Shown piece by piece: positions 24,990 through 30,600 of a stretch of DNA of 64,000 nucleotides (positions are counted from its first letter, which is position 1; each line of letters starts with the position of its first letter). The position numbers were made by a program, and so were the translations under genes. Origin of the DNA: Dimorphilus gyrociliatus (lineage: Eukaryota > Animalia > Annelida); NCBI GenBank assembly GCA_904063045.1, contig CAJFCJ010000019.1, positions 2,543,179-2,607,178 on the forward strand, read 5' to 3'. The notes below the pieces were generated by a model. It was not told the DNA's origin and made no database searches. It was given only the letters and a program-made list of their open reading frames with translations.

Positions 24990-26293
24990 CCGTATTGAGG
25001 GTTAAAAATACGAAGATTCGGCATTTTCAAGAAACAAAAATGGCGGCACTAAATGTATACTACTGTTGGGGTTTTTAGCATACAAAATTTATTTATATTA
25101 ATATTTCTTTCATATATCCAACTAAAGAAACAACTTTCTATAATATATTTTAATCATTCAAGTAGTGAAATAAATATTTTCGATGAAAAATTCTTGTCTT
25201 ATTGTTTGGAATCTACTTGTTTATAATAATATATTCGTAATTACCCATTAATTTCTGGTTTATTTTATCAGAATTCTGTGATATAAATTGTGATTAATGG
25301 TTAGAATTAACTACCTAAGGAATTATTTCATGTACTGAATGTGAAGCCCCTGTTCTGTACAAGTCCCAATAGTTTTATTTATTTTACAATATGTCGTTCT
25401 AGTGACGCTGAGTTATACACAGCTGCAAATGTTTCTCTCTCTTGTACTGGCAATTTCTTTGTTAATAAAATGCGGAACTAGGCAGACTGACATTTTTAAG
25501 TAGGCGTACATCGTAGGATGCGGTTATACCAGTGTGATTAATATCGATTGGATGACCAAAAAAAAAAAAAAATATATTCCCATACAGGAAGCATTCAAGT
25601 ATTACGTAAATGGAATAGAATTAGGAAAGGACTTCCAACGTAAATTATAGTGCACATCCATCAGATTCAATCGATAGGGATTTTACATTATAGAAATATG
25701 CGATCGCGTATTTTAAAAAAAAAAGAAAAAAAAGCGACAGCAGATATTTTAAGCGTTTAAAAAAAGTAAAGATCAATATTGCGTTGTGTACTGACGTTAT
25801 ATACAGAATACACTAGGCACATTACGTTGAAGTTTGTATTTTTTTAAATGAACAGTATTTTACTCCTAGCATCATTGTTCTGTGTCACTAAATATTTAAT
25901 AGGCGCAATCTTAGGGTGTGCCTGTGCTAGCGAAACGACGAATTAGCTACAAGTGCAACCGGGCCTGTACACTTTCTATATTGGTAAATCTTACAATATC
26001 TTCCATATAGGCTCAATTCAGAGCGCTTTCTGTTATCATCGATCAAGCCTATGCAATTAGATCTAGTACAAGGAATTGTATCTTACAGAATACAATGCAA
26101 TTATATAAGCTGAATTCTAGATATTTATAATCTCCATATTTGAGGAAATACCAAACGTATGCATCGTGTCAGACATGATATTCTAGGAAGATTATGTTTG
26201 ATATTCAGGTTAAACATTAAAGTAGAAATTTCGTACTGATTAAAGTTAACAGAATCCCTTGGCAAAAATCAATAACTCAACAGTTGATACTAG

Positions 26294-26432
26294 TATTGTT
26301 CGCCAATTATAAACATACAGAGCGGATACTGTAAACTTATCGGACGAACTAATCATATTATCATTCCCCCTACACTCGACACGGCTCTAATGCAATAGAA
26401 CGCGATACAGAACTCATTCATAATGGAAAAGG
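26294..26432 (-). ncRNA. Box H/ACA snoRNA candidate (139 nt)
   Basis: Hairpin - H box ATAATA (26361-26356) - hairpin (GTTCG..CCGAT/ATTGG.CGAAC lower stem, TACAG/CTGTA upper stem, internal pocket) - ACA 3 nt from the end. Intronic, about 58 nt from the acceptor. Confidence 0.55.
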
Positions 26433-26658
26433 CCGACACATTCGTTGTCGAAATGCCAAATGTTTTAGTGACATTTTACTTTAATAACATAAATCGTCTT
26501 TCCTACAGTAAGAGTGTTCAGCCAACTTGAAAACGCTATACAAAATATTCATGGCCATATTGCTCTATTTATTATAAGGAAATGAAAAAAAATCGTTCGA
26601 TGCCACGTGGTCCGCAACATATTAAACGTTAGGCTTAGAAATACTGGAAGACTTACAA

Positions 26659-26732
26659 CATCGCATGCCCTTATCAAACCTCCGTCCAGTGAAAGGAGAA
26701 CTGGGAAGAAGATTTGACAAGGAGACGCAATG
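26659..26732 (-). ncRNA. mir-184: pre-miRNA of the mir-184 family; mature 3p arm 26688-26667 UGGACGGAGGUUUGAUAAGGGC
   Basis: 19/22 identity to canonical miR-184 (UGGACGGAGAACUGAUAAGGGC) with an intact seed. Long hairpin with 5p arm CCTTGTCAAATCTTCTTCCCAGT, 2-nt 3' overhang geometry, lower stem CATTGCGT/ATGCGATG, and CNNC (CTTC) at +17. Confidence 0.92.
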
Positions 26733-27269
26733 AAGGATTTTTGTCCGTAGAATCGATGCCGCCCAAATCGATGAGGTGTGGTGCTGTATTGTAAAGGGTC
26801 AATTAATTTCCTCCTTTATTCTACGTCTTTCCTTGGTATAATTTCGAGAAAACTTACTCGAAGGCATACACTACAGACAATAAAATGTTTTTCGTAGAAT
26901 AGAACGCCTTAATTCTCGCCAAATGTTCGACTAAAAGACTACCAACCTCACCATCACATTTCTGTCGACAAAATGGCGGAGTAGAAAAGCTGATCGATTT
27001 TCCAGTGAAAGTGTAAAAATTTTCGCACAGTTTGTACTCGGTCAATTCGATTTTTCACCCCCCCTAATCAACGCCACCTACATAGCTAGGTAACAAGTTT
27101 TTATGCACTGCTGCTGTTATTAGACGGGTTTGTGATCAGAGACTTTTATATTTAAAAGCATTATTTCGTTGTTTTAAGTACTCTAGCCGTTTATATACGG
27201 TACGATTAAATAGTTTTTAATGTTTAGCCTTGTACTTTAATATGATTCTTGTTGATATTTCAGAAAAAT

Positions 27270-27674
27270 ATGAACGCTCCTCCAACTTTCGAGTCATTCA
27301 TTTTATTCGAGGGCGAAAAGAAAGTCACTATCGAGAAAGATACAAAAGTACCGAACGCAGCTATATTCACAGTAAATAAGGAAGATCATACTATAGGAAA
27401 TATCTTAAGATGCCAATTGCTTAAAGATCCAAAGGTTGCATAATATAATACTCTTAACAAATATAATTAACCTAAAAACAACCAATAGGTTTTATTTGCC
27501 GGTTATAAACATCCGCATCCTCTTGAGCATAAAATCGTTCTTCGGGTGCAGACAACACCTGATACTACTCCTCAGATAGCGTTGACTGAAGCTATAACGG
27601 ATTTGATATCAGAGGTTTCGCTATTAGAAGAAAGATTCCGGGATGCGATAAGAGAAAAGAAAGAAATTGATTGA
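27270..27674 (+). CDS. POLR2J: RNA polymerase II subunit RPB11, 116 aa, 2 exons
   Basis: Exons 27270-27434 and 27489-27674. [32 protein letters not shown]|[15 protein letters not shown]. Confidence 0.97.
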
Positions 27675-30600
27675 TAACTTCATACAAACGGAAATGGAGT
27701 TGAGACTTTTATTATACTTTTGTTTATTTTTTTGTTTTGATACATCGTAAACTAACGCCATCTGCCGTGTAATTTCACCTGAGGCCGATACTTAGCTTAA
27801 TGTATTTTACACGCTAGAGAGCCTTCGACGCGTGCATCTATCGATGGTCGACTTGGCCCGATAACAAAATTTCAATTAGAATGAATTAAGCTCGCATTTT
27901 ATGCGTAATGAAACACGGTGCGTTGAATTCGCGTGCGTATTGTTGAAGCGACAGATGCCGGCGACTCAACATTTCTCCTCCACTTCACAAGTAATTCCCG
28001 CAAAAAAAAAGCGCGGGATCACATGAGATGAAAAGCTATAAAAACTATAATGAATCGCTCTGTGCTAGGAACATACACGCCCGACACTTTGAACCTGTCT
28101 CTCTGCTTTTTCGAATCTAATCTTTCAACAAGGCTCGTTTGTTACGCGATTATGTCCTTTTCTTCGCCGGTATTTATATTTCGGACAGACGGTACGAGCA
28201 GGATTTGTTTGACATTTAACAATGAGGGTAAAAAGGAAAGTTAAATAGGGTAAAGATAGGATAGATTGGTTATAATGAGAGGTTAAAAAGAGTAGCCTCA
28301 ACCCTTACGTTTTCTTTCACACTTTTTTCTTTTAATTTTACGACTCGATCGTGTAGGCGAATCTGTTTATAGCACCTTTTTTAGCGCCCATACGTATGTC
28401 GTTTATATCGAGTTGAATGTTGGCGGCTAATTAATGAAAAAGAATTTTTTAGTTCACTCAGCGCAGATGCACTAATTAAAGACGCGAAAATTCGCGTGAG
28501 TCGGTTAAAGGCGTCGTCACGCCTCTAGATCACAGAATTACGTAATCTCTTTGTCAGTGCACGGACGCTCTTAAAAGCTCGCCGCCGAGAAAAATTAACT
28601 TGTCCGACCTATGTACTGACATTCGACGTTGACCGGTGCATTGGACGCCGGCAGCTAATGTCTCTCGCTGAGCGGTCACGCGTCCCTCTTCTCACCCGGC
28701 AATTTCTCATTATCTCTTAAATTCATTACCATTTCGTAAAAGTGGGAAAAATCTTCATTTGCCGACAGTTGTATCAAATTGCATATACTGCAATGCACGC
28801 GACGGAAAGTGACAGAGTTATTGGCTGGCTTTAAAAATTTCCCTTTATCGTTTCAATCTGGCGTGCGTATGTATGTGTGTGTGTATAGGTATATTAGGTA
28901 CTGTGCATGCAGCGTCGAACGACGTAGGGCGTCGATTCGCAGTTTCGATAAGACGTTTTTCTTTTTGTCTAGTATTCCATAGTTTTCCGTAATTGCTGTA
29001 CACTATAATAGAATCGTTCTATAGAGGCGTCAGTAAATTGTTCGCTCTTCTTACAAACGCCTTTGGCGGGCACGCATATTCGACGCCCGCATTTTTGGAG
29101 CTTTTTAATCCATTTTATTACGTAATGGAGTGCTATCGAACTATACCCGCATACACTGTCGTTCGCGTGCTATGCAGTTCGTGTCTCGTATTACTATTAC
29201 CGCTTTTTCCCGTCTTACGTAATCTGTCTCTTATTTAGCTTTTAGTGTAAATTGTTAGGAGTGAAAAATGAAAAAAGAACGAACTTATTCAAGTGCATCG
29301 CGTTCAATCATGCCGTTCTTTTATTCTTCCCTCGAGGATTCTAAGGGGACGCTACGCACGAAAATTTATCGCCAATATTAATTTTTAGGCGGTTTTTCTC
29401 GTGCGAAGAAAGTATTTTAGAGGAAATTAATACAAAGAACAAACCGCAAAGAAAAATATTAGAAGAAAATAAGAAGAGGAGATGGAAGAAGAGGGGGATT
29501 ACCGGGGAGGATGAATTGATAGGTTGACAGCGTCCTTATCTCTAACCTGTTGCACTTATTTGCATTGACAGGAGTGAAAACGATGCAAATGAGAAAGCAG
29601 ATTATCGTCGAGTGATCTGCGGGTGCTGCGTGGAAGTGTTTATTGACGCTGATTGTCTTCTTCTTGGCACCAGTCGTCTTTTAGCTTTATCACCAACTAA
29701 TATATTCATACTTTCTTGAAATGACACAGGGTTACGTAACACGCGTTCGCTCTTAACGCGTCAATCTCACTCTACTTAAAATCGTTTATAATCCTTGTTT
29801 AAGATGGCGTCGAAATTTATTGTTTAATTTTATTGACATACATTAGCTGATACATTTATCTATTTAGACTAATACCTTTCTAATAAACAATGCATTAAGG
29901 CACTTGTATGCTTTCTGTATGTTGAAAGTATTATATGGAGAGATTTCGTATTATTTTCACCACAGCTCATTTTGTTCTCCTTTCCATACCCCCTCCTACT
30001 ATACCAATTAACGTTATCAGGCGTGGCACCAGATTACACGTTGTAAATAATCAGATTAACGAAAATGCCACCTCTGTTGCCCGTCTGTTTTGTCTTTTTT
30101 TTATAACGGGTTGTAAAGAGAAATTACCGTATCGGATTGCAAACGGGAAAGCGTTTCAAGTTGTACCACAGAAGTACCCCCCACTCTTCGTCTGATTCTT
30201 TATTGTTTTAACAGCTACCCATATTGTGTAAATTTACATAGCGTATCAATTGGAAATTGATGGTAATTTTGTGACGTAATGGGAAAAAAAATACGAGTAC
30301 TTTTCCACTTTGTATACAAAACTGTATATTGTATATAGGCACAAATCGGACTTGAAATAAATATGTATTTTTTTCCAGATTATACGGGCGTGTCAATCCG
30401 CTAATTATGCAAATAATCAGCTTTACTCTAGCGAAGGAGCGCGCGCCTTTAACGAGATAATCGGCTTAGAAACGTCGTTGTCCAAGTGTCGAAAGCTGCC
30501 GACGAATTTTAATCATAAAGCTTGAAAAATTGCAACATTACTCCAAAAGTACACATTCTTCCTGTCTTTTTCCCCTCACTAAATACAGTATTTATATTTA

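Follow-up and report, generated by a model that had tools for sequence, protein, structure and literature searches.

An exonic mir-184 hairpin with a variant centre in a spliced noncoding transcript divergent from POLR2J in Dimorphilus gyrociliatus

The locus and its transcripts

The window, a 64,000-nt stretch of contig CAJFCJ010000019.1 of the Dimorphilus gyrociliatus assembly, holds a mir-184 hairpin on the minus strand beside POLR2J on the plus strand, and a SUFU-like gene whose 5' end lies farther along the minus strand. Transcripts were followed in the Logan contigs of four runs (4501 nt compared), which keep the major path only and are blind to ends, strand and level. The contigs of run X6 are identical to the window and show introns removed at GT..AG joints, three in the SUFU-like gene (60, 86 and 62 nt) and two in POLR2J (64 and 54 nt); since spliced exons of both genes are present, X6 is RNA. 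Run X5 represents a relative whose POLR2J exons differ from the window by 6-10%, and run X1 is a coral metatranscriptome that holds a close lineage. The features of the locus are listed below, each with the evidence behind it.

27270-27434 and 27489-27671, plus strand: POLR2J (RPB11) coding exons; Pfam PF13656 (RNA_pol_L_2), E 3.4e-8 and 2e-15 from separate searches of the two exons
27200-27263, plus strand: 64-nt intron in the POLR2J 5'UTR, after a noncoding first exon; GT..AG joint in X6
26970-26979, minus strand: putative promoter-proximal motif CCGCCATTTT; exact-copy search
26858-26990, minus strand: exon 1 of the noncoding transcript, 5' limit provisional; X6 record 23 and X5 record 18 (26948-26894)
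26784-26857, minus strand: confirmed 74-nt intron (GTAAGT...ACAG) upstream of the hairpin; joint in X6 record 23
26168-26783 (at least), minus strand: exon 2, one uninterrupted RNA contig; X6 record 23
26657-26734 (stem 26732-26659), minus strand: mir-184 precursor hairpin; Rfam RF00657, fold z-score and covariation
26701-26722, minus strand: predicted 5p (star) arm, CCUUGUCAAAUCUUCUUCCCAG; pairing in folds
26667-26688, minus strand: predicted mature miR-184-3p, TGGACGGAGGTTTGATAAGGGC, whose positions 10-12 read GUU; alignment to the mature block of 27 other hairpins
26651-26656, minus strand: GTAAGT, a 5' splice-site-like hexamer 2 nt past the stem; sequence, read through in contigs
26647-26650, minus strand: CNNC motif (CTTC), +17 from the 3p end; sequence
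26565-26656, minus strand: candidate 92-nt intron (GTAAGT ... T8CATTTCCTTATAATAAATAG), its donor and T-rich tract plus AG being like those of six confirmed introns of 54-86 nt; sequence only
26568-26573, minus strand: AATAAA with a GU/U-rich stretch after it (26546-26528), which may be a proximal poly(A) signal; pattern scan

POLR2J was confirmed on the plus strand with the mir-184 transcript head-to-head on the minus strand, which is the divergent arrangement that a preliminary description of this DNA had proposed. Exon 1 of the mir-184 transcript and the POLR2J 5'UTR exon lie on a single gapless X6 contig, which means that the divergent units abut or overlap; X1 cover reaches 27040. The motif CCGCCATTTT has two exact copies in the 64 kb, both on the minus strand, one at 26979-26970 and the other by the SUFU-like 5' end, at 25046-25037. 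The SUFU-like gene and the mir-184 transcript probably share it as a promoter-proximal (YY1-like) element, and its placement supports an independent promoter for the noncoding unit. RNA cover of the SUFU-like gene begins at least 25 nt upstream of its copy of the motif and, by analogy with that gene, the mir-184 transcript may start upstream of the TOP-like CTTTTCT at 26989.

The host of the hairpin is represented by X6 record 23 (1305 nt), which covers 26168-26783, skips 26784-26857, resumes over 26858-27198 and then follows the POLR2J introns. Its joint 26783/26858, with 255 nt on the shorter side, reads CT..AC on the plus strand and GT..AG on the minus strand, which shows splicing of a minus-strand transcript at intron 1 and use of the acceptor before 26783. 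In X5, record 18 is a 139-nt spliced fragment of 26948..26735 with Illumina adapters at both ends; 26948-26894 is followed there by 35 unaligned letters and then by 26783-26735, a layout consistent with splicing of 26857-26784. RNA contigs confirm this intron, which places the hairpin in an exon of a spliced noncoding RNA, as had been predicted from the sequence. The prediction that the hairpin fills a 127-nt exon (26783-26657) fared less evenly: the 5' boundary, at the acceptor 26784/26783, is used, but the 3' boundary is unsupported and about 50 nt of exon 2 precede the mir-184 stem.

Neither exon 1 nor exon 2 contains an ATG-started open reading frame longer than 36 aa or gave a Pfam match when the exons were searched separately, and a coding gene at the host locus was rejected because the open frame of neither exon matched Pfam. 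A search for transcript contigs through exact small open reading frames likewise returned no match. One frame stays open for 140 codons over the junction (27045-26858 plus 26783-26552, minus strand), in sequence of 65% A+T and with no ATG in its first ~120 codons; it is probably open by chance, though odd. Farther downstream, long T and A runs at 25575-25735 draw unrelated contigs, especially from run X2, and two apparent joints, from 25578 to 25711 and from 25733 to 27718, were set aside as low-complexity artefacts and not splicing.

The mir-184 hairpin and its centre

The microRNA mir-184 (Rfam RF00657; MirGeneDB Mir-184) is a bilaterian microRNA. In a permissive Rfam scan of 25500-28000, RF00657 matched 26734-26657 on the minus strand over its full length (model 1-86 of 86) with 47.6 bits and E 1.4e-8, a score 6.5 bits below the curated gathering cut-off of 54.1; scanned at the gathering threshold, the whole 64-kb window gave no match. 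The three altered centre bases described below and the short loop probably account for the shortfall. Folding of the 82-nt hairpin gives -36.9 kcal/mol (z -7.49), a stability that none of 200 shuffles reached, and in a sliding 90-nt fold of the minus strand over 27060-25200 it was the sole significant hairpin, with no second miRNA or structured RNA. Its stem extends over 26732-26659 and ends in the pair C26732-G26659, leaving U26658 and U26657 unpaired; in the folded helix a C/C mismatch (26724/26667) separates the lower stem of 8 bp from the upper one of 16 bp.

Comparison with other hairpins and with the rest of the genome gave a consistent picture. Across 28 aligned mir-184 hairpins the lower stem covaries at six pairs, each with both sides changed in 3-13 sequences, and the window hairpin keeps every conserved stem pair of the alignment while having the shortest loop of the 28. 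It is the sole mir-184 match in the 77.9-Mb, 349-contig genome, among the 56 of 9370 candidates that were scored, and the genome holds no paralogues of the hairpin or of exon 2, which is single copy. The full-length RF00657 match, the stable fold and the conserved seed agree with the original assignment to mir-184, and judged by its sequence the locus is a genuine copy of this ancient microRNA. Dimorphilus was entered in MirGeneDB 3.0 as a genome-only species without small-RNA reads (PMC11701709), and its mir-184 hairpin is probably already catalogued.

The predicted mature 3p carries the seed GGACGGA, and its positions 1-9 and 13-22 match the protostome consensus and are identical in the 27 other hairpins. 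When the window and these 27 diverse hairpins were aligned, the mature block was invariant outside positions 10-12, which read GUU here versus AAC in the family. This variant centre had been noticed before; it was seen again in 26688-26667, together with a compensating change on the other arm. The 5' arm reads CAAAUC in the window versus CACUUC in the family, and the 5p AAU (26715-26712 region) pairs with the altered mature centre, such that U11-A and U12-A replace A11-U and the C12/C mismatch and G10 wobbles with U. The usual C12/C mismatch is therefore gone because of the 5'-arm changes, and the altered centre, being compensated in a hairpin that still works in the modelled fold, is not a sign of decay. 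The 5p arm itself would start at 26722 if the conserved CCUU and a 3' overhang of 2 nt are taken as guides.

To place the GUU centre among other sequences, metagenome contigs were scanned with the pattern TGGACGGAGNNNTGATAAGGG, which yielded 116 stretches; L074 (labelled human gut) was left out of this analysis entirely, and matches with T next (the vertebrate type) entered the triplet tally only, being excluded from the alignment and further searches. The centre triplet was AAC followed by C in 99 matches and GTT in none of the 116 stretches, and the only hairpin-type exceptions to AAC were AAU in L086 and, as a tandem pair, GAU and GAA in L017 (also in L043). Synteny with POLR2J or SUFU was found on none of the metagenome mir-184 stretches. 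The tandem pair occupies L017:2453-3016 (identical in L043), where 472 nt separate two mir-184-like hairpins that have GAU and GAA as their centres and an A after GGG; from its sequence it looks like a tandem diverged mir-184 pair of some invertebrate.

Compared with the Mir-184 family, the Dimorphilus copy is thus alike in its full-length covariance-model match, in having the mature product on the 3' arm and in a lower stem that falls in the same alignment columns as those of the 27 other hairpins, and it differs in GUU instead of AAC at positions 10-12, in the counter-changes of the 5' arm, in its loop and in a score below the cut-off. Positions 10-12 of a microRNA form the slicing and central-pairing region. 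The GUU centre could alter central-pairing targets with the seed kept, and it records a rare compensated three-base change of the centre in one of the most invariant animal microRNAs.

The GTAAGT at the stem base and the downstream sequence

The preliminary description had the stem end 2 nt before a GTAAGT, with CTTC at +17, and both placements were confirmed in the sequence. CNNC motifs are known to function in Microprocessor processing, and this CTTC may do so as well. GTAAGT occurs in the window at a rate of 2.7e-4 per nt per strand, and 26656-26651 is the only GTRAG in 26783-26168; because the hexamer is so rare, its presence at the stem base is unlikely by chance (~0.3% for a 10-nt slot, noticed post hoc). 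Intron 1 is spliced from a GTAAGT too, and other confirmed donors nearby are weaker (GTAATT, GTAAGA, GTAAAA, GTACGA and GTTGCA).

The RNA contigs bear on whether this hexamer is a used 5' splice site, as had been claimed. X6 record 23, the same contig that is spliced at intron 1, crosses the GTAAGT (26656) unbroken and continues 488 nt beyond it; X5 record 17 likewise crosses it unbroken, from 26664 to 26457, and X1 record 2 crosses it unspliced. X1 is unspliced even at intron 1 and comes without coding exons, for which reason it is possibly DNA and uninformative on splicing. No joint leaves 26656 in the contigs of any of the four runs, in which minor forms drop out. Splicing from 26656 is not the main form, and rare use is possible, since contigs follow the dominant path and may lack infrequent forms. 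The earlier proposal had depended on the AG and GT sites that flank the hairpin, and it is split by these data: the AG acceptor at 26784/26783 is used, whereas the GT at 26656 is read through.

Downstream of the GTAAGT by 92 nt, the tract that closes the candidate intron, followed by AG, resembles confirmed acceptors. Given this acceptor-like tract and a length typical of introns here, a short intron at 26656-26565 would be more plausible than a long intron bearing a snoRNA. Contigs continue past the acceptor-like tract at 26565 and past the AATAAA, and use of either is not visible in them. Among the other mir-184 loci listed, GTAAGT was found within 40 nt after the mature sequence in 0 of ~100, so the arrangement is not conserved in the mir-184 family.

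An H/ACA RNA had been predicted in the sequence that follows the hairpin. Rfam gave no match in 26150-26665 even at E<=10, and a 196-nt region and two would-be H/ACA hairpins had fold z-scores of +0.41, -0.81 and +0.45 against shuffles. A rule-based H/ACA scan, which required two stems (lower and upper), a two-sided pocket and a pocket-to-box distance of 13-17 nt, yielded a single 9-bp model before the ACA at 26463 and none ahead of the AGAGCA "H box" (26566). Its totals were those of shuffles (10 versus 8.4), 64% of which yielded an H+ACA pair. The 3' splice-site-like tract (26565-26600) ends in an AG with which the "H box" AGAGCA overlaps, and the box also adjoins the AATAAA. With no Rfam match, no fold signal and a geometry equal to that of shuffles, an H/ACA snoRNA at 26640-26458 was rejected, and inspection by eye for box C/D motifs found none convincing. 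The proposed splice-versus-crop switch that would feed both a miRNA and a snoRNA is unsupported because there is neither a used donor nor a snoRNA, and nothing beyond the placement of motifs speaks for it. That this switch was not borne out saves effort, since competition between splicing and cropping has already been described in mammals.

Two smaller items concern the same flank. The idea of a telomerase-RNA template at CCTAAC (26634-26629) was dropped, as only 6 nt match. A 6-bp hairpin (TCGACA...TGTCGG) followed by CCTTTTCC lies at 26433-26451 on the minus strand, just past the ACA at 26463-26461 and near the X5 contig end at 26457.

The related lineages add information on the hairpin flanks. 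Seven differences listed for X5 in the first POLR2J coding exon all fall at multiples-of-three spacing, that is, at one codon position. X5 contigs hold both flanks of the hairpin at depths of 2.7-4.9, and the hairpin itself (26734-26665) is absent, a gap that fits efficient cropping. Record 17 begins 2 nt below the Drosha cut predicted for the 3' arm and stops 1 nt past ACA+3 (ACA at 26463-26461), and over 26664-26457 it differs from the window by 2 bases and a 2-nt deletion in a T run. Divergence of the hairpin flanks in X5 is 0-1%, compared with the 6-10%, apparently synonymous, of the coding exons; these values suggest constraint on 26457-26664, contamination of X5 by a near-identical strain being possible. 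In the closer lineage of X1, 26531-26732 contains 7 substitutions.

Explanations of the locus

We hold it fairly probable that this locus is devoted to mir-184, its product being a spliced lncRNA that serves as the primary transcript and runs divergently from POLR2J. Transcription would start in the promoter region common to POLR2J; in the RNA, the short exon 1 is joined over the 74-nt GT-AG intron to the long exon 2 carrying the single hairpin. The Microprocessor (Drosha/Pasha) would then crop the exonic hairpin via a lower stem of ~10 bp, probably aided by the CNNC at +17, and release a 56-nt pre-miRNA, from which Dicer would yield a 22-nt 3p with the canonical mir-184 seed and the GUU centre. 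The GTAAGT would not serve as a constitutive donor, and the downstream sequence would be 3' flanking sequence of the pri-miRNA instead of an H/ACA snoRNA. The near-identity of X5 over 26457-26664 hints at an extra constrained downstream element, for which a lncRNA that serves as pri-miRNA does not account.

Such a transcript has counterparts among known systems. It is built like lnc-pri-miRNAs such as human pri-miR-122, in which a spliced noncoding RNA chiefly carries an exonic hairpin downstream of an intron (PMC11347158), and it differs in its tiny scale, with a 74-nt intron, an RNA of <1 kb and a promoter region shared with POLR2J. For the human cases Microprocessor-dependent termination has been described. 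Like the 5'TOP snoRNA hosts of the GAS5/UHG type, it is a short spliced noncoding RNA beside a housekeeping gene with CTTTTCT near its possible start; unlike in those hosts, no snoRNA was found and the miRNA hairpin is the only structured element. With these contigs, a conserved microRNA gene of an annelid whose genome is very small can be viewed at transcript level for the first time.

Other explanations turn on what the GTAAGT does. The hairpin could be a splice-site-overlapping miRNA (SO-miRNA), with 26656 as a regulated or inefficient donor and 26565 as its likeliest acceptor; U1 and the spliceosome would compete with the Microprocessor at the basal junction of the hairpin, where splicing would remove the CNNC and the AATAAA, and cropping would destroy the exon. 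A perfect GTAAGT, the same as the donor of intron 1, 2 nt from the stem and the sole GTRAG in the exon, argues for this, as do the acceptor-like tract (T8...AATAG/AG) 92 nt on, an intron length typical of this locus and a CNNC that falls inside the would-be intron. Competition of this kind is documented for mammalian SO-miRNAs and the MIR222HG mini-exon (PMC3794580, PMC7566567), and known cases such as miR-34b and the MIR222HG mini-exon likewise have a splice-site consensus against the hairpin base and the CNNC on the intron side (PMC3794580, PMC7566567). The splice sites of those cases, however, are annotated and used, whereas the Dimorphilus site was not seen used in contigs: no joint leaves it in four runs, and X6 and X5 read through it while X6 splices intron 1. 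The hexamer is also missing from the 40 nt after the mature sequence in all of the ~100 other mir-184 loci listed, and in later work cropping of endogenous SO-miRNAs was without effect on exon inclusion (PMC6097652). We regard regulated splicing at 26656 as unlikely, though deserving of some weight. A GTAAGT that is present yet read through would also suit a non-splicing U1-binding element, one that suppresses the AATAAA 83 nt downstream in a telescripting-like manner or recruits the Microprocessor. In mammals, U1 affects the choice of poly(A) site and the processing of intronic miRNAs. The AATAAA at 26573-26568 and its GU/U-rich stretch do follow the hexamer and contigs do continue past them, but the motif could be a chance match and contigs are blind to 3' ends; we think this role improbable.

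The downstream sequence might instead hold a second functional RNA at ~26664-26457, an atypical snoRNA-like or other stable RNA whose 5' side is freed by Drosha and not by splicing. The ends of X5 record 17, 2 nt below the predicted Drosha cut and 1 nt beyond ACA+3, are what such an RNA would leave, and the record is only 2 bases and a 2-nt deletion off the window, compared with 6-10% in POLR2J. Its depth, however, is only 2.7, and the 7 substitutions of the closer lineage X1 in 26531-26732 make the constraint inconsistent between runs. Against it, too, are the lack of an Rfam match, of a thermodynamic signal and of H/ACA pocket geometry, the overlap of the "H box" AGAGCA with the AG of a 3' splice-site-like tract, and the possible cross-contamination of X5 by a near-identical strain, and we consider this RNA very improbable. 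A scheme in which mir-184 output results from a choice among cropping, splicing and early polyadenylation in one RNA of ~0.7 kb seems rather unlikely; the U1 site at the basal junction would head a mostly retained 92-nt intron containing the CNNC and the AATAAA, and the Drosha cut might also free the constrained 26664-26457 RNA.

Within the spliced mir-184 host itself, the 3' part of exon 1 (26858-26936) stands out as a diverged block in both related lineages, with sequence on both sides aligning well. In X1 the block spans 26864-26936 and is of the same length and unalignable, and in X5 it spans 26858-26893, with 35 letters in place of 36.
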